Positions 6,787 to 46,920 of a DNA stretch of 64,000 bases are shown one piece after another (position 1 is the first letter of the stretch; every line of letters starts with the position of its first letter). The position numbers and the translations under genes were made by a program. The notes under the pieces are model-generated. The model searched no databases. It saw only the letters and a list, made by a program, of their open reading frames with translations, and was not told where the DNA came from. This stretch comes from Pecten maximus (taxonomy: Eukaryota): contig NC_047018.1 of NCBI RefSeq assembly GCF_902652985.1, positions 39,618,001-39,682,000 of the forward strand, read 5' to 3'.

Positions 6787-7164
6787 TACTTTAATTGGAT
6801 TTCAACGCCTGATGACCCCATCTGACACTGTCTAAGCTAAGTTGTTTCCACCATCCAATAATTAATGATTACAAATTTTGCAGACAAAAAAATAAAATAT
6901 GATTAATGTGCAGAGGTGGTCAAAAACAAATATATTAGAGATGACCGGCCAAGTCTGAACGTCCACACTACATTTTTACCCTGTGGCCATTGTGGCGGTC
7001 AGTCGGTAACACTAGCACTCGATGGACAGGAAATATTTCTCTAATTTGATGTTGTTTCTGGACAAATGACCAGAGCTAAAATATCAGACCATTGAGGAAC
7101 ATTAATTTCCTGTTCTATCATTGTAAGACCAGGCCGTTATATTTGTATGTTTTGTTCTCGACAG

Positions 7165-7322
7165 ACAAGGGTACAACATGTGGCGGGATCCGATGAAACC
7201 CACTCAGATTCTGGCCAAGCTCTGTAAAGAAGGAAAAGTGGATGGACCACACTACCAGCCCGGCAAAGTCCGCATTGCCAACCGTATCTTCACCGCCTCC
7301 ATGGACCAAGATTTTGACAACG
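7165..7322 (+). CDS. OTOF: Otoferlin-like coding exon (inter-C2 linker)
   Basis: Acceptor gacag| and donor |gtaac. Translates (I)[52 protein letters not shown]. Phase 2 in, phase 1 out, consistent with neighbours. Confidence 0.95.
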
Positions 7323-7490
7323 GTAACAATTCATTAAAAAAAAACATTGGAGACAATTAGTTTTTGCTAATAAAATATACTATGTTTAAAAAATGTGTTT
7401 CTTTTGAAAAAAGAAAAGGCAAAACAAACAATTTTCAAGGAAATATGTAAATTTTCATAATTTCAAGGTTTTCATAAACAATTCAGAAGT

Positions 7491-12857: not shown

Positions 12858-13079
<222 letters not shown>

Positions 13080-13998: not shown

Positions 13999-14124
<126 letters not shown>

Positions 14125-14641: not shown

Positions 14642-15060
<419 letters not shown>

Positions 15061-19900: not shown

Positions 19901-20169
19901 NNNNNNNNNNNNNNNNNNNNNNNNNNNNNNNNNNNNNNNNNNNNNNNNNNNNNNNNNNNNNNNNNNNNNNNNNNNNNNNNNNNNNNNNNNNNNNNNNNNN
20001 NNNNNNNNNNNNNNNNNNNNNNNNNNNNNNNNNNNNNNNNNNNNNNNNNNNNNNNNNNNNNNNNNNNNNNNNNNNNNNNNNNNNNNNNNNNNNNNNNNNN
20101 NNNNNNNNNNNNNNNNNNNNNNNNNNNNNNNNNNNNNNNNNNNNNNNNNNNNNNNNNNNNNNNNNNNNN
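19901..20169. other. Assembly gap (269 N)
   Basis: Run of N flanked by pyrimidine-rich low-complexity DNA. No otoferlin exon appears to be missing across it, because 14835 joins 27636 in frame with contiguous homology. Confidence 0.99.
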
Positions 20170-26235: not shown

Positions 26236-27635
26236 CACATATAGTTATTTATGTATTTACAAAAGGCTCACTTGCTATGTAATAATTTCACCCTTGAAAT
26301 ATTTTCTATTTTCGTCTCTGGGACTGGGAGGCTTGTAATTTAATTAAGCAATATCTTGTATATAATTAACATGTATGACAAATTAGATAATTATGTAAGT
26401 GGCTCCAGAATTTATATGAAAATTATTGAATTATTCAATTATACTCTTTACAGTCATTGATGACATCAGCTCTCTCCCTATTTTCTCTAATTATGACTTC
26501 TGATTAATTCATTTCTTAATTAATACAAATTTTATCAGGTATTTAGCTTGAGAATTAATGTCATAGGTCATTTATAATGAAATTTAAATTTTTCAAAATT
26601 ATTTTTGTATTTCAGTTTATTTATCTATTTATTTGTTTATTTATTTTTTAATTGTATCTGATAAAAATTTGTTGACCCTTGAGCATACAAGTTTCTTATA
26701 TAACTTTGTAGGTTTCTTACTAAATCATTTGGGAGTTGATATATATATATAGTTATGATATATATATATATAGTAGTTTTTTTATCCGAAGGTGGTTCCT
26801 AAGTTGCATTCTGATTTTTTTGATTTTTTTTTTTTTCTGCTGAGTAATTATGAATTACCCCTTGGTGTACCCCAGAGTCGCCAATACTTCTCATTGCATA
26901 ATCTTTTGTTGAAATTGTTCATTTGAGGATGAAATTTTGTTTCACCAGCAACGCATATAAAAGCGGTGTTCTGGTAGGGTAGAAAATGAAGGTAGTCATA
27001 AATGTTATGGTATCAAATTACCGTAACAATGTTGCCATTTAAAATGTATATTTTGAAATGTATATTTATGATAAAAGCTTCGTAATTTGCATACTTGTGA
27101 CCCTTGCTCACCTTTAAAGAGATAAGCGTGATTTGAATATATGCTTGCGTGCTGGTGCTAGGACGTATCAATTAGCCAAGCCAGTGTGTTTCTTTTTAAT
27201 CATTATCAGATATTTCTGATGTGGTAAGATAACCGATTCGGCCATTCACCGAAATTTCATTTATAGTCGAAAGAAGAAACAAGTCTTTCACGGCGTGTTA
27301 AAATATATACCATGATTTGCTAAAATGAAAAGTTTTGATGGAATTTAATCTTTCAGTTGAATAAGATGATCCTTTTAACAAACAAAGGAAAACCATAAGA
27401 AGATATTTAAGAAAAAAAACATTCAACTAACGCAAAATATCTTATTTCTGAATAAAGAATACTGCATTTGTCAAAAAGTGAGTTTTTATCCAACTTCAAA
27501 TGGGGGAAAATAAATGGTTTATTAAATGAGGTATTAACGAGATGCTTATTTACATTTAATGTATATATTGTTTGTTCAGCTACAAGACAAGATTTTAAAA
27601 ATTTAACAAAAGGATATTGTTTGAATTGTTTACAG

Positions 27636-27826
27636 GTCCCTAACCGGGGAGGGAAATTTTAACTGGAGGTTTGTCTATCCGTTTGAATACCTGATTGCTG
27701 AGGAAAAAATTGTCATCTCACGAAAGGAGTCCTTATTTTCTTGGGATGAATCGGAAACAAAGATCCCAGCCAGACTTAACCTACAGGTGTGGGATGCGGA
27801 CCATTTCTCCGCGGACGACTTCCTTG
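27636..27826 (+). CDS. OTOF: Otoferlin-like coding exon (final C2 domain core)
   Basis: Acceptor tttacag| and donor |gtaaat. Translates [63 protein letters not shown], containing the ferlin motifs GEGNFNWRF and [13 protein letters not shown]. Confidence 0.97.
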
Positions 27827-30800
27827 GTAAATAAATAATAATTATTTATCGTGAATGTGCTTATCAGTGTTTTCCATTTATTTTACACATATTGAACTTA
27901 TACTTATTGTGTTTTATATGAAATTTTTAATTGTTTTAAAATACTTTGTAGCAGAAAAAAATTTCTATTTATCCCAGAATTTTATTAATGATTTTCCTTA
28001 TTGAATATTTTATTGTATTAAATTTTTTTTTTAATGTATAATCAGTGTGCAATTTCTTAGATTCTAATAGACTCGAGATTTGACTGTATTAAAATCTAAA
28101 TACATCTTCATTATGCACACTTTATAACTAAATGTGAAAAACATTAATTATGATAATAAATGTAAAGTTCAGGAAAATTGCCTAAAGGAGTTTTTTCACT
28201 TTCAAATATTTTTAAGTTGTTTTGAAAAAGTTTTTTACTGATTTAAGTTGCATTTATTTTTCAATTTAGACAAAATAATGAAAGTTTCTATTCTGGTTTT
28301 GTTTGCTTTTATTACTATTCACACCCAGGGGGGAAAAAATTGACAGTATTTTTATTTTTATTTTTACAAAAAAACTTTACAAACAACCGCTAACAAGATC
28401 AAGGTACATGTATATAAAACTTGATGGAGGCTGTAACAGAATAAAATATGCTGGGAAAATTAAATTATAATTAAGATTATTATCGTTTGTATATAAAATT
28501 AATTTATCAAACAGGTATTTTATTTCATTATAAAAAAATAACTTTTGTTACAATATTACGTCACAACAGCTTATTAATCTTATGATAAATACTGGCTTGT
28601 GTATTAAATTAACTATTGTACTTAGAAAATGATTCACGATAATCTTTATCCAGTATGAATATTGTTCTGTGATGAATATAGACTCTTCAGTTCAAAAGCA
28701 TGCTCATCTAAATCAATTGGTAATTGAGGGAGAACATTTTCGGTTATTATTTTTTATTTATTTTTTATTTTTCTATTTTTATTAGGAAAAATTCTTTTTT
28801 CTTCAATACAAGTGAATTTCATTCAGAAAACATGACACTACTGTTTGGTCAAGACCTATCATTTAAAAGCAAATATCAATTGTTAAGTTTATTTGATAAA
28901 TTTGCCTTTGGCTTTTTGATGTATCTTTGGTTTGAAGGTGTTTTATTGATAAACTGTGGAAACTTTTTTTTATATATCAAAGAGAACAAAAAAAAGCTGA
29001 AGCACTTAGCAATATTTATAATTGTTTAAAATAGAAAAAAGATCATCTGACATGGAAATGGCCAATAGTATTTTCCTCAGAAATTTGGATTTTTTCTTTC
29101 AATTTTTCTTCATTGAATTTTCACTTAAGTTTATTTGCTGAACTCTTGAATTTTTGGTAAGTGAGTTTTTTTTCTGAAATTATAATAAAAAGTGTTTTCC
29201 TTTTCAATTTGCAAAAGATAGATATTTACCAAAGTATTCCAAATTTGTATAACCTCATATGTTAAAAACTAAATTTTATAAGTTTGTGACAAAATATGCC
29301 AAAAATTTATATATTATATATATTATAAAGACTGATTTAGTAAGTCAATTTCACATTTGGTTGACAAATCATTGATGAGGAAGATCCACTACTGTTTCGT
29401 TAGGCCACCAAATATGTTTGGAAGCATTTGCAGTAAATGTCATAATTCTGATCTGCGATGAAAATGTTGTAATTATGAAATGAATTGGAACAGTATTTTG
29501 ATATGAAAATGATGCAATGTACATCTGTTTAGTAATGTACCTCAGTTACATATACGTATCTATCGTAATAGATATTGAAATAAATTACCCTATTGATTCA
29601 TGTATCAGACAGATTACGTAGATTTCATATTACACTTTATAAGGCCTTTATTGTAGATTGCAAAACATTGATTGGTCAGAAGTCTACATCTCAACAATAC
29701 AATCATACTACCCCTATTTAGGAGAGAAACTCCTCATTTTTTAAACCAAATTTTAGACCTCTATAAAATTTGTTAATTAAGATACAATTATTCCACCAGA
29801 AAGAACAACAAGAAATGTTCTTTTCTGAGGCTAGAAATTTTACCCCAAAAATATCCCATCACGGTTACTTATGAGAAAGTATGAGTAATTGCTTGAAATC
29901 AGTTCATTATAAAAATACATTTAGTAAAGTTGACTTTTTTGCTATAAGTAAAGTACTTGTGTTGAAATTATTGTGTTTTATGACTAGTTAGTCAATGTTT
30001 AATAATAAAAATAGAAAAAAAAAACATTTTTTTTAAATATCTTAATACTGCAGAAAATGAAAATCAGAACAAATCACTAATACAAATCTAAATCTACAAA
30101 AAATGTGAAGTTGAGGTTCTTGCATATCAAAATAAAATATTTCAAAAATCTTGCTTGTTACAGTATTATCTAAATAACCATAAAAAATCCTAAATTCTTT
30201 CTTTTTTTTCTTTCTTTTTTTTTGAGAAATTTCGCCTTTGTTAAATAAATATTTTTGAGAAATTGAAACATTAAGGAAAAGTATGCTGATGTAATGGTCT
30301 TTGTTTATCAAAACAATAGTTATCAGGGATGGAAATGATCTGAGACGAAAATTATCTCAAATAGGTTGTTCTTGTCGGGAGGTGAGATTAAACATACCAG
30401 CATCTGACTTTCTGATGAGGAAAAAACTGAAATCTTTCAGACTGAATTTTGAAATGTTGAAACAAAATGAGTATATGATATTTATAGAATGACTCACGCA
30501 AGTTGTATAGGGAATTTGGCTGCCAAGATATGAACCTCTCTCACAAGCATTCGTATGTACCACTCGGATCGACTAGTTTCTGGCAGAAGTTTTGTTTTCT
30601 TTTAGCATTTACAAGATTCTTTATACCGCCATGCCTTAGAATGAACTGATAAACCGTATTTATTCAAACGAACACCATCACACTAAACTAGCTCAATTAG
30701 TCGGTACAGGAAACGGAGAATGGCCTGGACCATTGGTACCTCGTGCTGGGCATTCGATAACGACTCATGTCGACTCATCTTAGCAGCAATCTCTCTGATT

Positions 30801-32626: not shown

Positions 32627-32636
32627 ACGTCCACAG

Positions 32637-32821
32637 GTGCCCTGACCCTTGACCTGAACCGGTTCCCACGTGGTGCCAAGTCAGCGAAACTATGTTCACT
32701 GGACATGCTAAAGACCGATGGAAGTGTACCACAGATGTCACTCTTCAAACAGAAGAGGGTCAAGGGGTGGTGGCCATTTGCAGTCAAGAGTGACGGAGGA
32801 GAGGAAGAGTATGAACTCACA
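32637..32821 (+). CDS. OTOF: Otoferlin-like coding exon (end of final C2 domain)
   Basis: Acceptor ccacag| and donor |gtgagt. Translates (G)[61 protein letters not shown]. Confidence 0.96.
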
Positions 32822-33754
32822 GTGAGTCAATTTAGATTTCATTCTATGAAAATTAATAACATTAAGTTTGTTTTGTCCTTGTTTTGTTGCATGACCTTCC
32901 TAACTCCCCGCTGTTGTTTAACCTTGAGATGACCTTTAATGACCTTAGTTGTCAGTTTTCCAAGACAACCAATGAATTTCAAGCTACATGTAATTATTTG
33001 AATTGTTGTATGTTTATGAAAATGTAAATGTTAAATGTTTCTTGTAATTTTATAAAGTTCTGGAAAATATCCTTACTTGATTTTGTTAATTTTTTTAATT
33101 ACATCAATCAGTGCATATATCTTTGGTGTAATCCAGATTATTTCAACAAATTTTTTTTTTCCCAAATTCAGTTCCATTAACACTTGTTTACATGAAAATA
33201 TTTTATTAGAAATAATAAGAATAAATTGTCTTATAAAATGTGGTTTTGTAATTCACATGTCAATTTCTGCTTTAATTCTTGACTGAATTTTGAAGAAAAC
33301 AAAAGAAAAAAAATCCAGACTTATTAGGTTCAGACAATAAGCTGCTGATATTTCCATAACAGAAAGTAGTCTTACAGATGTGGTTAATTCAAAATTCTAT
33401 CAAAAAGGAATTCTATTTCTGTTCTAAAAAATATAAATGGTAGCTGCCGTAATGATAGAGAAAAGACAGTATTCATGAATTCTACATCACTGTTGCCATG
33501 ACAATTGAAAATTCATTTCAGAATGGATGGCAACTCCAAGTAAGTTGTTATGAACACAAACGGTTTATGATATGTTGATATTTCACACATGAAAATATTT
33601 TTTCTAGGTCAAGGTGATGGGGTCTCTTCTTTATGTGCACCTTGGTATATAATGTAGGTTAAGGTGACTGTCAATTTGTATTTGCACACCTTGGTATATG
33701 ATCTAGGTCAACATGAAAATATATTTTCTATCTGAGTATGTTACCTTGGTCAAG

Positions 33755-35530
33755 GTGACTTTCTCTTGTATCTGTTCACCTGGGTATCTTATCTAGGTCA
33801 AGGTGACAGTGTCTCTTGTATCTGTTTATCTAGGTATCTTATCTAGGTCAAGGTTACAGTCTCTTGTATCTGTACACCTGGGTATCTTATCTAGGTGACT
33901 TTCTCTTGTATCTGTTCACCTTGGTATCTTATCTAGGTCAAGGTGACAGTGTCTTTTGTATCTGTACATCTGGGAATCTTATCTAGGTCAAGATGACAGT
34001 GTCTCTTGTATCTGTACATCTGGGTATCTTATTTAGGTCAACGTGACAGTGTCTCTTGTATCTGTACATCTGGTATCTTATCTAGGTCAAGGTGACAGTG
34101 TCTCTTGTATCTGTTTACCTGGGTATCTTATCTAGGTCAAGATGACAGTGTCTCTTGTATCTGTACATCTGGGTATCGTATCTAGGTCAAGGTGACAGTG
34201 TCTCTTGAATCTGTTCACCTGGGTATCTTATCTTATCTTATCTAGGTCAAGGTGGCAGTATCTCTTCTATCTGTACACCTCAATGTATGATCAAGTCAAA
34301 GTGACTGTCTGTGGTATCTGTACATCTAGGTCAAGGTGACTTTCCCTTGTTTCTGTACATCTGGATATCTTATCTGGGTCTAGATGACAGTGTCTCTTGT
34401 ATCTGTACATCTGGGTATCTTATTTAGGTCAAGGTGACAGTGTCTCTTGTATCTGTACACCTTGGTATCTTATCTAGGTCAGGGTGACTTTCCCTTGTAT
34501 CTGTTCACCTGGGTATCTTATCTAGGTCAAGGTGACTTTCTCTTGTATCTATACACCTTGGTATCATATCTAGGTCAAGATGACAGGGTCTCTTGTATCT
34601 GTACACCTGGGTATCTTATCTAGGTCAAGATGACAGGGTCTCTTGTATCTGTACATCTGGGTATCTTATCTAGATCAAGGTGACTTTCTCTTGTATCTGT
34701 TCACCTGGGTATCTTATCTAGGTCAAGGTGACTTTCTCTTGTTTCTGTACATCTGGATATCTTATCTGGGTCTAGATGACAGTGTCTCTTGTATCTGTAC
34801 ATCTGGGTATCTTATTTAGGTCAAGGTGACAGTGTCTCTTGTATCTGTACACCTTGATATCTTATCTAGGTCAAGGTGACTTTCTCTTGTATCTGTTCAC
34901 CTGGGTATCTTATCTAGGTCAAGGTGACTTTCTCTTGTTTCTGTACATCTGGATATCTTATCTGGGTCTAGATGACAGTGTCTCTTGTATCTGTACATCT
35001 GGGTATCTTATTTAGGTCAAGGTGACAGTGTCTCTTGTATCTGTACACCTTGGTATCTTATCTAGGTCAAGGTGACTTTCTCTTGTATCTGTTCACCTGG
35101 GTATCTTATCTAGGTCAAGGTGACTTTCTCTTGTATCTATACACCTTGGTATCATATCTAGGTCAAGATGACAGGGTCTCTTGTATCTGTACACCTGGGT
35201 ATCTTATCTGGGTCTAGGTGACAGTGTCTCTTGTACATGTATCTGTACACCTGGGTATCTTATCTAGGTCAAGATGACAGGGTCTCTTGTATCTGTACAC
35301 CCGAGTATCTTATCTAGGTCAAGGTGAGTTTCTCTTGTATCTGTACACCTGGATATCTTATCTAGGTCAAGGTGGCAGTGTCTCTTGTATCTGTTCACCT
35401 GGGTATTTTATCTAGGTCAAGGTGACAGTGTCTCTTGTATCTGTACACCTGGTTATCTTATCTAGGTCAAGGTGACTGGGTCTTGTACATGTATCTAAAT
35501 ATCTCGGTATATTATCTGGGTCAAGGTGAC
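33755..35530. repeat. 48-50 bp minisatellite (TATCTAGGTCAAGGTGACAGTGTCTCTTGTATCTGTACACCTGGGTATCT)
   Basis: About 35 copies in two length variants, with signs of higher-order duplication. Confidence 0.96.
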
Positions 35531-38402: not shown

Positions 38403-40633
38403 AAGACACCTGGACTTTGTGGGTACTGGAGACATCAGACACCTGGTTGTGTGTTAGTACTGGAGACATCAGACACCTGGTTGTGTGTTAGTACTGGAGA
38501 CATCAGACACCTGGTTGTGTGTTAGTACTGGAGACATCAGACACCCGGTTGTGTGTAAGTACTGGAGACATCAGACACCCGGTTGTGTGTAAGTACTGGA
38601 GACATCAGACACCCGGTTGTGTGTGAGTACTGGAGACATCAGACATCTGGTTGTTTGTTAGTACTGGAGACATCAGACACCTGGTTGTGTGTGAGTACTG
38701 GAGACATCAGACACCTGGTTGTGTGCGAGTACTGGAGACATCAGACACCTGGTTTTGTGTTAGTACTGGAGACATCAGACACCTGGTTGTGTGTGAGTAC
38801 TGGAGACATCAGACACCTGGTTGTGTGTGAGTACTGGAGACATCAGACACCTGGTTGTGTGTGAGTACTGGAGACATCAGACACCTGGTTGTGTGTGAGT
38901 ACTGGAGACATCAGACACCTGGTTGTGTGTGAGTACTGGAGACATCAGACACCTGGTTGTGTGTTAGTACTGGAGACATCAGACACCTGGTTGTGTGTTA
39001 GTACTGGAGACATCAGACACCTGGTTGTATGTGAGTACTGGAGACATCAGACACCTGGTTGTTAGTGAGTACTGGAGACATCAGACACCTGGTTGTGTGT
39101 GAGTACTGGATACATCACACACCTGGTTGTTTGTTAGTACTGGAGACATCAGACACCTGGTTGTATGTGAGTACTGGAGACATCAGACACCTGGTTGTGT
39201 GTGAGTACTGGAGACATCAGACACCTGGTTGTGTGTGAGTACTGGAGACATCAGACACCTGGTTGTGTGTGAGTACTGGAGACATCAGACACCTGGTTGT
39301 GTGTTAGTACTGGAGACATCAGACACCTGGTTGTGTGTTAGTACTGGAGACATCAGACACCTGGTTGTATGTGAGTACTGGAGACATCAGACACCTGGTT
39401 GTTAGTTAGTACTGGAGACATCAGACACCTGGTTGTGTGTGAGTACTGGATACATCACACACCTGGTTGTGTGTGAGTACTGGAGACATCAGACACATGG
39501 TTGTGTGTGAGTACTGGAGACATCAGACACCTGGCTGTGTGTGTGAGTACTGGAGACATCAGACACCTGGTTGTGTGTTAGTACTGGAGACATCAGACAC
39601 CTGGTTGTATGTGAGTACTGGAGACATCAGACACCTGGTTGTGTGAGTACTGGAGACATCAGTCATCTGGTTGTGTGTTTGTACTGGAGACACCTGGTTG
39701 TGTGTTAGTACTGGAGACATCAGACACCTGGTTGTGTGTGAGTACTGGAGACATCACACACCTGGTTGTTTGTTAGTACTGGAGACATCACACACCTGGT
39801 TGTGTTTGTGAGTACTGGAGACATCAGTCATTTGGTTGTGTGTTAGTACTGGAGACATCAGACACCTGGCTGTGTGCGAGTACTGGAGACACCCGGTTGT
39901 ATGTTAGTACTGGAGACACCTGGTTGTGTGTTAGTACTGGAGACACCTGGTTGTGTGTTTGTACTGGAGACATCAGACACCTAGTTGTGTGCGAGTACTG
40001 GAGACACCCGGTTGTGTGTGAGTACTGGAGACATCACACACCTGGTTGTTTGTTAGTACTGGAGACATCAGACACCTGGTTGTATGTGAGTACTGGAGAC
40101 ATCAGACATCTGGTTGTGTGTGAGTACTGGAGACATCAGACACCTGGTTGTGTGTTAGTACTGGAGACATCAGACACCTGGTTGTGTGTGAGTACTGGAG
40201 ACATCAGACACCTGGCTGTGTGTGTCAGTACTGGAGACATCAGACACCTGGCTGTGTGTGTCAGTACTGGAGACATCAGACACCTGGCTGTGTGTGTCAG
40301 TACTGGAGACATCAGACACCTGGCTGTGTGTGTCAGTACTGGAGACATCAGACACCTGGTTGTGTGTGTGAGTACTGGAGACATCAGACACCTGGTTGTG
40401 TGTGTGAGTACTGGAGACATCAGACACCTGGTTGTGTGTTAGTACTGGAGACATCAGACACCTGGTTGTGTGTGAGTACTGGAGACATCAGACACCTGGT
40501 TGTGTGTGAGTACTGGAGACATCAGACACCTGGTTGTGTGTTAGTACTGGAGACATCAGACACCTGGTTGTGTGTGTGAGTACTGGAGACATCAGACACC
40601 TGGTTGTGCGAGTACTGGAGACATCAGACACCT
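38403..40633. repeat. 34-bp minisatellite (AGTACTGGAGACATCAGACACCTGGTTGTGTGTG)
   Basis: About 65 highly similar tandem copies. Confidence 0.98.
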
Positions 40634-40946
40634 ATAGTTACACAACTAGGATTATCCCTGTGCCGGTTGGCTTGCTTTGTCACAGCTAATTATTGGAGTC
40701 AGCTGTTCTACCTGTACTGGTGATTAGATGCCATTATTTGATTCGTTGTCATCTCCTCTATAGTTATCTTCTACTGTAGCACAAGACTAACCACTCTTTA
40801 CTCTTGGTGAGGGGTCTTGTGTGCTGATTACGTTGATACTTTAGAGGCAATGCATCATGTATCAAAAGTCGGTCACTTTAATAATATAAGTCAAAGGTGA
40901 AAATGTAGGTCAAAGAAAAAAGTATGTCAACCTGATTAAACTAATA

Positions 40947-41580
40947 TGTACTGTATCGTCACCCGTTTACATCACGATGTACTGTATTGACACCTGTTTA
41001 CATTATGATGTACTGTATCGTCACCCGTTTACATTATGATGTTCTGTATCGTCATCTGTTTACATTATGATGTACTGTATTGTCACCTGTTTACATTATG
41101 ATGTACTGTATCGTCACCTGTTTACATTATGATGTACTGTATAGTCACCTGTTTACATTATGATGTACTGTATAGTCACCTGTCTACATTATGATGTACT
41201 GTATCGTCACCTGTTTACATTATGATGTACTGTATAGTCACCTGTCTACATTATGATGTACTGAATCGTCACCTGTTTACATTATGATGTACTGTATAGT
41301 CACCTGTCTACATTATGATGTACTGTATCGTCACCCGTTTACATTATGATGTACTGTAGTCACCTGTCTACATTATGATGTACTGTATCGTCACCTGTTT
41401 ACATTATGATGTACTGTATCGTCACCTGTTTACATAATGATGTACTGTATAGTCACCTGTTTACATTATGATGTATTGTATAGTCACCTGTCTACATTAT
41501 GATGTACTGTATCAACACCTGTTTACATTATGATGTACTGTATCGTCACCCGTTTACATTATGATGTACTGTATCAACAT
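40947..41580. repeat. 31-bp minisatellite (ATGTACTGTATCGTCACCTGTTTACATTATG) ending about 18 nt before an exon
   Basis: About 20 tandem copies. Confidence 0.96.
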
Positions 41581-41598
41581 GTTATCATTCTTCCCCAG

Positions 41599-41698
41599 GG
41601 TAAGGTAGAGGCAGAATTACACCTACTGTCCATGGAAGAAGCAGAGAAACACCCTGCAGGCCTGGGTAGAAATGAACCTGACCCACTGGAAAACCAAA
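41599..41698 (+). CDS. OTOF: Otoferlin-like penultimate coding exon (Ferlin C-terminal region), apparently missing one A near its 3' end
   Basis: Acceptor ttccccag| and donor |gtaagc. Translates [31 protein letters not shown]. It is 100 nt long and ends in phase 1, whereas both downstream exons need phase 2. Adding one A at 41690-41693 restores EKPN. Confidence 0.93.
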
Positions 41699-41899
41699 GT
41701 AAGCTACACGTTTCATTTTTGTCCTCTCATTTTTCTACTTTTTCCATTCTCCTCTTCTCTCATGTGAAGTAACACGCCTCTTGGTCTACAATAACAAGGT
41801 CTATAGTAGAAATATCTACATGACCTGTTGTATCTATCAATGAAATAGATCATTTTTCCAGTATTTGTGTCGATAGTCAATACTTTCATGTAACAGGAG

Positions 41900-42162
41900 C
41901 ACTTGAGGATTACCTCCCTTCTCACTTGAGAATAACACCCTCTTTAACTGGAGGGTTATCTCCCTTTTCTCTTCTCCCTTTTCTCTTGAGAATAACACCC
42001 TCTTTAACTGGACGGTTATCTCCCTTTTCACTTGAGAATGACATACTGTTTAACTGGAGGGTTATCTTCCTTTTCACTTGAGAATAACACCCTCTTTAAC
42101 TGGACGGTTATCTCCCTTTTTGCTTGAGAATGACACCCTCTTTAACTGGATGGTTACCTCCA
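41900..42162. repeat. ~46-bp tandem repeat (CTTGAGAATAACACCCTCTTTAACTGGA.GGTTATCTCCCTTTT)
   Basis: About 5 copies. Confidence 0.88.
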
Positions 42163-43824
42163 GGGTTGCCTCTTTCCTTGTTTAAGGTAGCCACTGTTTA
42201 TAGAATAGTGTTATACATAATATAATTGGATGTCTGGCTTTTTATCCTCTGCCACTAAGATACTTTCTGAATATTTCTGCAATATACACAATGCCACTAA
42301 AGAATGTTTTTTCTGTAACCATATTTATCCTGCAATAAGACCCCTGATATCCCCAGACCTAAAAAAATGTTGGCTTAATACAAGACAATGGTATTTGCAT
42401 TTGTTTGTGATTCTACAGACTTATTGCAGGATAGATATGAATTCTTGATGCATTTTGTGACATTTTGAGTTGTTGAATATCATGAAACCTCCTAAATTTG
42501 AACACATCAGATTCAAAATTGTAATATAATAAAATAAAAATTCAGAAATAGTGCAACAATAATAGACTAAAGAAATCCTGATTCCTATATACAAACATTC
42601 CAGAATTTTTTGACATTTGAAGTTCAGATTAATGAGGTTTCACAACAAAACAACAACAACATATGCATGTGCTTAGTGACTAATTAATCACCATGGTTAC
42701 AGGAGTAAGTCTGTCACTTAAGGTGTTATTTGGTTTCTAGTCTCTTTCCACAGCTTCCCATCGTGGTTCCATCTTACTTCCAAAGACTAACATATAATTT
42801 GGACTTGTCTACTGGTACCTTCATATATTTCGTATTACTAATAAATTCTTTGCTTTTTAGCATAATTACGACAATTTAGATTCTTTTTTTTGCTTGAAGG
42901 CTTGGAAGATTTTTTCATTCTGCAGATTTTCTATTCAGCGAAACCCTGATTTTTCTGGCATTATGAAAGGTCGGGTAGGAAAGGGTGTCGTTAAATTGAG
43001 GTCTCGTACCTATTTTAATTGGGTATGTTGCCCTCTGTATTCCAACATGTGTTTATTGTCCTCCAACGCGTGACGAGTACAATATCAATGATAATAAATT
43101 GCACATTTAAGGTATTATCAACAGTTGTCTCCCCTTTGCATATGTGCTTGATGTTTCACAGATGAATGTCAGACCAAAAACAAATCAATGTTTAGTTGTA
43201 TAATTTGTCAAGTTGTCTCCTTTGAAAAACTTTATGAATTTGGTAAAATCTTGGATAAAACCTGGACACTGTTCAATGCTGTTTTTTTTTTTTTCTCTTG
43301 TCTTTCCTTCTTACACTCTTTACACATGAGGGAAATGTTGCATTCAATGTTTTTTTTCTTTTTCTCCATCATTTAATCTATTTTAACAATTTCTGGTCTA
43401 TCTCACTTAAAATGCATACAACTTAGTCAGTGATTTTGCCTGAATTTGATTCAGAGTCGAGCTAGGATCTTTTAACACCTTACTCATGATAGCATGATGC
43501 AGTTTTGATAAAGAAAATTCTTTGAAATTCTGTTAATTTTTGTCTTGCTTACCTTTGCATGAAACTCAAATACATGAATCCAGTCTAGATAAAGATTATT
43601 TACGATAATAATGAATGAATGCATCATAACAATATCCGGAGTTCTCATGTTTGGCTTGAATAAGATTGATTCAATTTAAGGTAAAAAAAAAATCCTAATA
43701 TTTTGATACATTTTCAAGTAATAATTCAATTAATGAATATGCATGAATTTTTACAAAGCACTCGCGTGAAGACATCATTTCCTTCCGCTTGTTTTTAGTT
43801 TTGTAATTTTGTGGTTGTTTACAG

Positions 43825-44005
43825 TCGCCCAGATACTTCGTTCATCTGGTTCCTGAGTCCCCTCAAATCCATTCGCTACATCTTGTGGAACAACTACAAA
43901 TGGGTAATCCTCAAGATGCTCATCTTCAGCGCGTTGACAGCCATCTTGGTTCTCTTCTTCTACGCCATGCCGGGTTATACCGTCAAGAGGATGTTCGGCG
44001 CTTAG
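43825..44005 (+). CDS. OTOF: Otoferlin-like terminal coding exon A (tail-anchor TM, Trp variant)
   Basis: Acceptor gtttacag|. Translates RPDTSFIWFLSPLKSIRYILWNNYKWVILKMLIFSALTAILVLFFYAMPGYTVKRMFGA*, with a hydrophobic C-terminal TM. Stop TAG at 44003-44005. Confidence 0.94.
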
Positions 44006-44164
44006 GTAGATTTGTTATGCTATTGGCTGAAATTCATAATTAGAAGATTTTTGTTGGTCATAAGCTTGTACCTGCCTAATTTAAGATTGTAACACTTCAT
44101 TTTTATCTGACATCCTTTTTTACTTTTGACTTCACAGAAACCCAATTAATGTTAAACTCAAATT

Positions 44165-44512
44165 CTACAGCAACACCTCCTGATGTAACACAGATTTTAC
44201 AGCAACGCCTCCTGATGTTGATTTGTCCAATTTTGTCTTTGCAGAGAGGAATAGTCAAATATTGTCTTTATAGTGATATAATTTTATATATATATACAAT
44301 GTATATCATAGCGATATTGAATTGTCATATTTTGTCTTTACAGCGACCCCTCCTGATGTTGAATTGTCAAATTTTGTCTTTATAGTGATATAATTTTATA
44401 TATGTACACGTGTATATATATCATAACGATATTGAATTGTCATATTTTGTCTTTACAGCGAACCCCTCCTGATGTTGAATTGTCAAATTTTGTCTTTACA
44501 GCGACCTCCTGA
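44165..44512. repeat. Local tandem duplications between the two terminal exons
   Basis: Recurrent CCTCCTGATGTTGAATTGTCAAATTTTGTCTTTACAG modules and a duplicated ~115-bp block. Confidence 0.8.
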
Positions 44513-44650
44513 AATGTCAGCACTGTTTACTAATATTTTACAATTGTTCCCTTGTAGGTTGCCAGCCACACCCCTTTTCTGAAATGTTACCTTTATTTTC
44601 TTAGCCTGATAATGCTACGAAATCCCTAATGTTGTATTTTGTCATTTCAG

Positions 44651-44831
44651 TCGCCCGGACTCGTCGTTCATCTGGTTCCTGAATCCCCTAAAATCTATCC
44701 GCTATATTTTGTGCCACAACTACAAATGGGTTATAATCAAAGTGCTGATTGTCTTAGCACTGGCAGCCATTTTGGTTCTCTTCTTTTACGCCATGCCTGG
44801 TTACATGGTCAAGAGGATGTTTGGGGCCTAG
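44651..44831 (+). CDS. OTOF: Otoferlin-like alternative terminal coding exon B (tail-anchor TM, Cys variant)
   Basis: Branch-like CTAAT near 44626 and acceptor catttcag|. Translates RPDSSFIWFLNPLKSIRYILCHNYKWVIIKVLIVLALAAILVLFFYAMPGYMVKRMFGA*. Same length and phase as exon A; stop TAG at 44829-44831. Confidence 0.94.
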
Positions 44832-46920
44832 GATCCACAGGACAGTCTCGAAAACACCGACTGAGGACGTTCATATCCAGTGTATACCCGCAAACTAGCG
44901 TAGACTATTTTGGTTTTCTTAATATCATACAGATACATCATTAGTGGTCAGGAAGGAAGCCACATTTCCGGGATTGATCAAATATTGATCACCATGGTAA
45001 CTGTGTCTGTCGAGTAATAGACAGTTGGAATCCTATATACCACAGGAAGTAGGGCTGTCGAAACAATAGCTGTACGGAAATGTCAATACTCTCGACGCGC
45101 TTCACTGCTTCAACTCGGATAGCCAAGGGTTTAAAATATCCTAATATACAAAAATGCTCCTTACCTATTACGGAAAGTGCTCATAAACCTTGTGTACAAT
45201 AACACTAACCTCCGAAGTGCAATAAACTCGTTATACCTGTTTCATTTTTACATGTTGACACAATTTACCTTGTACAAAATGTATTATAGTCAAAACATTT
45301 TTATATGTTTACAACTTTTTCAAGTCTCATTTTTTTTTTTTTTTTTTTCATTCATCATCATCTCCATACATAACTAAAAAATTCCTCAAACTTTCTCCAT
45401 TCAATAAAAAAAAATACTGGGTAATATTGTATTTGCTCACACATTCCATTTATCTTTATTTCCTGGCTGCTTTACGGTATCTGCCCATCGTTCTTGATAT
45501 TACGGTAGATTTATTCGTATTTGTACTTGAGAAAACAACTTCTGACTGTGCAAACGATAATCAGCATATATTTGTGCAATAGAAATTTTTGATAATTTAA
45601 ATATAAACAATAACATAATTCGGTGTTGGATATTAATTCAGGGGTTCCCAGTAATGTGAACAAGGGTGGATTTAACATCGGAAGTGTTTAAAAAACGTGG
45701 TAAGACAGGGTTGAATCCTGTAATATTTTGTTTGGTTGTTTCATATTCATATGAATGAAGTTTTAATACACAAGAACTGAGAATTGTGATATACGTTTAT
45801 GCATACATTGTATATAGATGTTTATTCAATGTTTACACTTGTACATAGGGATGTTTTTACTTGTATGTTTACACAATGTTTTTGTGATGTTTGCTCTGTG
45901 TTGATTGGTCACCCATCTCTCATTCACGTAGGACAATTGACCAATGGTCATTAGCAGACAACATTTAGAGGTGAAGGTCTTCTAGATAGCACAGTAGTGA
46001 TAAATGACTTTTCTATTAGCAGAGCACAGGAAAGTTCAAGGTCATTTGGACATGTAGGCTGTAGCTGTATTTCATCTACAGTGAGAATTGTAAAATTTTA
46101 CTCATACAATTAATTATTATGAAATTCATGCGACAAACCAACATTTCACCTGTCACAAAAAAAAAGTACACAAGCAGTTCACAAAAAATTCTGGGCAGTT
46201 CATCAACTTTTCAAAACTGTTCATCAATTCATGAAAATGTTCATCATTCACTCAGAAGTGTTATTTGTCCAAATCACAAATCTTAGATAATTTATGCACA
46301 GTGATGACCGCCTGCCTAGTACCCTGTTCAACGATTGCCATTCATTGGTCACTCTAGGTGTATCAGCTGTTGGTCATAGGTAGGTGTAAGTCATTGGTCA
46401 ATAGTAGTCACATGACCCATCATCAGTCACTAGTTGTAATAGCCAATGGTCAAAAATAGTGTAAGTCATTGGTCACTATACATATGTAGTTGTAATAGTT
46501 GCTGGTCACATCAGCCATCGGTCAAGTTTCAAGAAGACCTATAAGCATCTTGGTCATACATGTTCCATATATTATATTGACAATTTCAAAATGTGCATGT
46601 CATTTTTCTGGACCAAGGTCATCTGGAACATGCAGAGGTCAACTGTTAAGATGTATCTATCAACAATTAGTAATTAACGACCAACAACAATGAAATGGAA
46701 ATATTTAAGTAATCTTGACAAGCAGACCTGACACCTGATGTTTATAAACTGTGATTAATTGTTATTTGTTAAGTTTACAACAAAATACTGGTTGTGTCCT
46801 TTTTGTGTTTATTTCAAGAATATAAGTGTATATATCTTTTACCTATGCCAAAGTGTACCCTGTTTCTTCTTTCTACCATTTGTTCAGAAATAAATCTTTT
46901 CAAAACTTTAACATTGAGAA
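44832..46920 (+). other. Probable otoferlin 3' UTR (end uncertain)
   Basis: Follows the last stop codon and is AU-rich. AATAAA candidates at 45221, 45403, 46889 and 47054, with a distal one at 51117 followed by a GT-rich tract. Confidence 0.45.

Follow-up and report, generated by a model that had tools for sequence, protein, structure and literature searches.

Can an invertebrate otoferlin gene exchange the membrane anchor of its protein, as the human gene does? In human OTOF, exon 47 ends in a stop codon and gives the brain form, and skipping of this exon exposes exon 48, which gives the cochlear form (PMC7768390, PMC10394277). The reason why human otoferlin needs two anchors, one in brain and one in cochlea, bears on the choice of isoform in OTOF gene therapy. 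The question arises at a locus of the scallop Pecten maximus (assembly GCF_902652985.1, contig NC_047018.1, positions 39,618,001 to 39,682,000 of the forward strand), a stretch of 64,000 nucleotides referred to here as the window and numbered from its first letter. Near the 3' end of a ferlin gene in this window, two similar exons, A and B, follow each other, and each encodes a complete set of juxtamembrane segment, predicted transmembrane anchor and short luminal tail. The reading that we prefer, with a probability of roughly two in three, is that these are tandem-duplicated terminal exons that are used alternatively through a stop-containing cassette.

The window covers the last ~455 residues of the protein, which is the 3' third of the gene; the 5' two thirds lie outside it. 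When residues 1609-2063 of the annelid protein P0063 (Owenia) are aligned by tblastn, eight exons are placed between 1650 and 41698, followed by both tails, and exons A and B compete for the same last 60 residues of P0063. All exons lie on the forward strand. The first seven, with approximate boundaries, are at 1650-1823 (53% identical to P0063 residues 1609-1666 and 88% to Pinctada P0263), 7142-7324, 12900-13034, 14032-14121, 14687-14836, 27625-27828 and 32636-32809. The penultimate coding exon, which encodes the segment ..EPDPLE.., is at 41599-41698, with acceptor cag at 41596-41598 and donor GTAAGC from 41699; it matches positions 65-96 of the Pfam Ferlin_C profile (PF16165, 154 positions; E 3e-8). 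Both tails score above the curated cut-off of this profile. The window exons match the otoferlin-like proteins of Haliotis and Pinctada at 83% identity, a fish otoferlin at 67% and DysF-type (type 1) ferlins at 43-49%. Since identity to otoferlins is higher than to DysF-type ferlins, and with the Ferlin_C matches in agreement, the gene is by this ranking an otoferlin (type 2) orthologue, as an earlier note on this DNA had held. The only relative with a solved structure is the dysferlin tail in 9b8k, which aligns with both tails (exon A, E 7e-11). A search of the whole assembly with a tail profile (918,306,378 bases in 3,983 contigs) returned exons A and B and one weaker place on another contig (L003, G000:C12:3196542-3196688). 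The latter is a single copy that covers profile positions 1-49, has no tandem partner among the scored profile matches and presumably belongs to the second, DysF-type ferlin gene of the scallop. The introns of the otoferlin gene contain a run of 269 N (19901-20169) and, in the 8.8-kb intron before the penultimate exon, three large minisatellites: one with periods of 50/196 nt at 33732-35530, one of 34 nt x 66 at 38404-40633 and one of 31 nt x 20 at 40946-41575, which ends 23 nt before the penultimate exon acceptor.

The two tail exons are where the earlier note had placed them: exon A at 43825-44005 and exon B at 44651-44831, both on the forward strand, 181 nt each, with 645 nt between them. 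A direct-repeat scan found them as a single long pair (43819-44006 and 44645-44832), 81% identical and 826 nt apart from start to start. Both acceptors read cag followed by an exonic T that completes a split codon. Each exon thus consists of 1 nt of split codon, 59 codons and TAG; translations from 43826 and 44652 both open with RPD.SFIWFL and match Ferlin_C positions 99-153 (E 6e-12 for exon A, the Trp type, and 1e-11 for exon B, the Cys type). The hand counts made earlier were exact, with 10 of 59 amino acids and 21 synonymous codons differing and no stops or indels. At the nucleotide level, 35 of 180 positions differ (8 at first, 3 at second and 24 at third codon positions), which corresponds to dN ~0.09, dS of 0.8-1.3 by four methods and dN/dS of 0.08-0.11 for the A-B pair. 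In simulations that placed 35 random substitutions on exon A, a mean of 24 residues changed; none of 20,000 trials produced 10 or fewer residue changes, and the frame stayed without a stop in 28%. The low dN/dS fits constraint and, with the simulation, upholds the view that both exons are under purifying selection and that neither is a dead copy. Outside the exons, identity reaches background within 10-20 nt. The synonymous differences are evenly distributed along the exon, which argues against a recent gene-conversion tract between A and B. With unrelated flanks and a divergence of 19% that falls mostly at third positions, the pair is an old duplication, and both copies have been kept by selection.

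The two anchors differ unevenly along their length. In both, tail residues 27-45 form a hydrophobic window of 19 residues, after which come ~14 residues and the stop; the best 19-residue Kyte-Doolittle mean reaches 2.60 in A and 3.21 in B, the more hydrophobic of the two. At the cytosolic border, A and B differ at positions 4 (Thr/Ser), 11 (Ser/Asn), 21 (Trp/Cys) and 22 (Asn/His), and in the first, cytosolic half of the helix at positions 29, 31, 34, 35 and 38. A single difference lies on the luminal side, at position 52 (Thr/Met); apart from it, A and B agree throughout the luminal tail and the second half of the helix. Twelve other mollusc genera (Haliotis, Mytilus, Mya, Octopus, Physella, Patella, Mercenaria, Mactra, Solemya, Liolophura, Pinctada and Gigantopelta) have, among the isoforms listed, a single tail each, which is of the Trp type and resembles B at positions 4, 11 and 22. 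Polarised against these genera, A is derived at 4, 11 and 22, and B at 21 (Cys) and 52 (Met); the five helix positions are too variable among the molluscs to polarise. Exon B is also 51/59 identical to the tails of Haliotis and Lineus. As judged from these comparisons, B represents the usual tail of molluscs, altered at two sites in an uncommon way, A is the additional copy, and neither of them appears to behave as decaying sequence.

That only one exon is used, most likely B, with A an unused or very recently silenced duplicate, is the first alternative to be weighed. It would agree with the single, B-like tails of the mollusc isoforms listed, with the weaker hydropathy of A and with the weak donor that follows A. 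At dS ~1, however, a copy that had evolved neutrally for most of the time would be expected to have gathered many replacements and probably a stop: the probability that no stop appears is 0.28, and that of 10 or fewer amino acid changes was 0/20,000. Exon A moreover matches the Trp-type tail of the hemichordate Ptychodera at 50/59 residues, and its acceptor is no worse than that of B. We regard use of a single exon as unlikely.

The sequence between and after the tails suggests how both could be used. The stop of exon A abuts a GT: TAG is followed directly by GTAGAT (44003-44011), so that a donor-like site, although a weak one, lies at 44006-44011 on the forward strand, whereas GATCCA comes after the exon B stop. 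The acceptor of exon A is as good as that of exon B. A scan for the canonical signals AATAAA and ATTAAA found none in the 645-nt A-B interval; the first ones are at 45221 and 45403, 390 and 572 nt past exon B, and lie in the probable shared 3' UTR (44832-45408, forward strand). The earlier note had drawn a parallel with human exons 47 and 48, and the layout resembles the human one: a stop and a potential donor end the first scallop exon, and no poly(A) signal of the two canonical types precedes the second. Under the preferred reading, when exon A is spliced in, translation would end at its last codon and exon B would become 3' UTR; when exon A is skipped, exon B would supply the anchor. Nonsense-mediated decay spares a stop codon that lies at an exon junction. 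Because the exon A stop occupies such a position, exon-A transcripts are expected to escape decay by the same rule. The switch would leave the C2 domains untouched and, as the A/B differences fall at the juxtamembrane border, in the helix and at one luminal residue, it would alter the membrane insertion, sorting or lipid interaction of this Ca2+-sensing fusion protein. Alternative use in RNA, cell-type specificity and a functional consequence of having A or B are what we infer from this arrangement.

The intron that would separate the two tails (44006-44650, forward strand) contains a 32-nt x 2 repeat at 44155-44218 and a 112-nt x 2.2 repeat at 44249-44498. Each unit of these repeats (44155-44498) carries a strong acceptor-like TTTTGTCTTTACAG; the repeats may serve as decoy acceptors or represent a small mobile element. 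Exclusive splicing of the Dscam type, by pairing of docking and selector RNA, was considered and dropped: an inverted-repeat scan of 41699-44660 gave short AT-rich pairs only, with none linking the penultimate intron to both acceptors. Short-peptide searches with the two tails returned nine single-exon open reading frames each and no scallop transcript fragment.

Comparable layouts occur in environmental DNA. A scan of metagenome contigs yielded 72 host-derived loci with the tail. In five of them, on independent contigs, two complete tail exons stand in tandem; each exon has an acceptor and a stop to itself, and a GT occurs no more than 16 nt past the first stop. These five comprise L010 (exons 92 nt apart, upstream exons closest to protostome otoferlins), the invertebrate loci L013 and L014 (Cys-type exon first, Trp-type second), L019 (first copy highly divergent) and L029 (exons 818 nt apart). 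These loci bear on a second alternative, in which both tails are used through alternative polyadenylation and exon-A transcripts end within the A-B interval. This is a common route to alternative last exons, and L029 does have ATTAAA/AATAAA between its tails. In the scallop, however, the interval lacks both hexamers and a GT stands directly past the stop, and a poly(A) signal between the tail exons is likewise absent in the other four of the five tandem loci, so that we consider this route improbable for the scallop gene. Three further loci (L021:1823-1999, L023:224-400 and L026:5906-6082) have a tail directly after ..EKPN without an intron, and the 360 residues before it align without a break. 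Either these loci are cDNA-like sequence, or they derive from an organism that has lost the introns at these places.

One feature of the assembly interferes with either tail. Exons A and B share a phase, which part of the earlier statement on phase stands, but the junction proposed there, from 41698 to 43825 or 44651, is out of frame in the assembly: the penultimate exon ends in CAA A before gtaagc at 41698, with 1 nt left over, and each tail exon needs 2 nt. The sole canonical GT-AG junction as assembled therefore puts either tail out of frame, with a stop ~11 codons in. Comparison with more than 30 homologues (all those retrieved) points to a run of four A at 41690-41693 on the forward strand as the site of a candidate one-A shortfall. 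The homologues read ..(D/E)PL(E/D)KPN and then, across the junction, RPD; the window reads ..DPLENQ. Adding one A changes CTG GAA AAC CAA A into CTG GAA AAA CCA AA, which with the T of the tail exon encodes L-E-K-P-N. As a single extra A restores both the conserved LEKPN and the phase, a homopolymer error in the assembly is favoured over a frameshift allele: the shortfall is probably a one-base assembly error, which breaks the gene model of the scallop, and a real frameshift allele is less likely. Other rescues of the frame, through GT donors from 41709 onward or an AG inside exon A, suit one exon only or need non-canonical sites, and were rejected.

If the shortfall were real, the gene would be broken in this animal, with neither tail translated from the allele and no anchored protein made from it. 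The assembled CAA A before gt, with a canonical GT-AG junction leading to an early stop in either tail, is what such an allele would look like; but the missing base lies in a homopolymer run, a typical site of long-read consensus errors, and its addition restores the conserved residues up to the RPD of the tails. Long-term constraint on both tails would be unaffected either way. We think it very improbable that the gene is broken. That assembly produced the duplication, for instance by collapsing or doubling a haplotype, is a general possibility that we virtually discount, because the exons diverge by 19% of their nucleotides, mainly at third positions and far over allelic divergence, between unrelated flanks, and because other species share the arrangement.

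How far this arrangement extends beyond the scallop was followed with a profile of both tails, which gave 359 matches among 1.84 billion representative proteins; the last 66 residues of the named members were compared. Starfish have the richest set of alternative anchors found. Asterias (amurensis/rubens; P0222, P0347, P0351, P0354) has at least four tails, two Trp-type and two Cys-type, in isoforms that are otherwise identical, and Patiria miniata (P0256, P0361, P0363) has at least three among the matches listed; some pairs of these starfish tails are merely 26-35/59 identical. The hemichordates Ptychodera flava (one Cys-type, one Trp-type) and Glandiceps talaboti have at least two tails each. 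In the amphioxus Branchiostoma belcheri, two neighbouring models, P0010 (KAI8499153.1) and P0011 (KAI8499151.1), consist of fused tail units only, two and three respectively, which points to at least five tandem tail exons that have been annotated as separate small proteins. In one model of the annelid Owenia fusiformis the first tail runs on into the second, and a teleost model also has two tail units. Single tails were found in insect-like metagenome loci (10 kb flank) and in a Mya-like locus (2 kb flank). Tandem alternative tails therefore seem widespread but not universal. Another match, P0012 (cluster members P0392-P0397, Logan), is 50/59 identical to exon B; its stop is read as Trp and followed by 40 more residues, probably by a gene call that applied a TGA=Trp code to an animal contig.

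The earlier expectation that only one exon would be annotated outside vertebrates was too broad, because alternative tails are already present in models of invertebrate deuterostomes (Asterias, Patiria, Ptychodera and Glandiceps), and an Owenia model includes its two tails. The literature searched, in which subscription journals are thinly covered, yielded no account of alternative tail exons for invertebrate ferlins. As far as could be seen, the tandem tail pair is new for molluscs and for protostomes generally, and the window adds a tail exon that the mollusc isoforms listed all lack. The presence of the cassette in a mollusc and its recurrence in an annelid, hemichordates, echinoderms, amphioxus and other invertebrates suggest that the choice of anchor is selected and general rather than a vertebrate oddity.

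The age of the scallop pair is harder to read from the tails themselves. A tree of 50 tails of 59 residues each, in which the vertebrate rows are database representatives (P0052 we take to be the mammalian exon-48 peptide), does not place A and B as sisters. Exon A pairs with the Trp-type tail of Ptychodera (95/95), and exon B falls among canonical mollusc and nemertean tails, outside the deuterostome Cys clade; the exon-48-type tails of vertebrates group with the Cys-type tails of ambulacrarians in a single clade (97/93). With 59 residues, a constraint that joins A and B lowers the log-likelihood by 7.4 units (p-AU 0.33), and one that places B in the deuterostome Cys clade lowers it by 7.9 (p-AU 0.34); the AU test rejects neither. 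So few residues are too few to date the duplication, and both a lineage-specific and an ancient pair appear compatible with the tree.

Alternation of Trp and Cys at tail position 21 recurs in vertebrates, echinoderms, hemichordates, the scallop and the invertebrate loci L013 and L014. For the scallop, we favour parallel change at this position over shared ancestry, because in other respects B resembles the Trp-type tails of molluscs. A broader reading, which is possible but doubtful, is that alternative tails are ancestral or repeatedly re-invented in bilaterian otoferlin and that the Trp/Cys switch at position 21 is their core, possibly toggling palmitoylation and hence the membrane or vesicle pool that the Ca2+ sensor occupies; as part of this tentative reading, the scallop alternation would have arisen from the Trp-type tail that is canonical for molluscs. 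A literature search, again with thin coverage of subscription journals, turned up no report of otoferlin palmitoylation. The ten differing residues and the recurrent Trp/Cys site narrow what the switch could change.

Among known systems, the closest is the vertebrate pair of OTOF exons 47 (TMD2, brain) and 48 (TMD1, cochlear). As in the scallop, two tandem homologous terminal exons of ~59-60 codons share the same RPD start, and a stop ends the first exon, with the human second exon used when the first is skipped. Position 21 is Trp in the first exon and Cys in the second in both animals, an order that is reversed in L013 and L014, and scallop B has Ile29 and Met52 in common with vertebrate tails of the Cys type. 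The scallop exons are, however, more alike: A and B are 83% identical, whereas the representative vertebrate tails P0031 and P0038 share 45/59 residues, and a review gives the similarity of the human transmembrane domains as <57% (PMC10394277). The ambulacrarian isoforms of Asterias, Patiria, Ptychodera and Glandiceps resemble the scallop in having several 59-residue tails with Trp and Cys types together, and the fused multi-tail models of Branchiostoma belcheri and Owenia likewise hold several 59-residue tails per protein; these ambulacrarian, amphioxus and Owenia tails differ in being known from database models and in their larger number of copies (at least four in Asterias and at least five units in amphioxus). 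In the exocytosis machinery, exons 5a and 5b of SNAP-25 are also tandem-duplicated alternative exons. As the scallop pair would, they exchange a stretch close to the membrane in a fusion protein, and with it the positions of Cys residues that are used for palmitoylation. The SNAP-25 exons are, however, internal and mutually exclusive, whereas those of the scallop are terminal and the first carries a stop.
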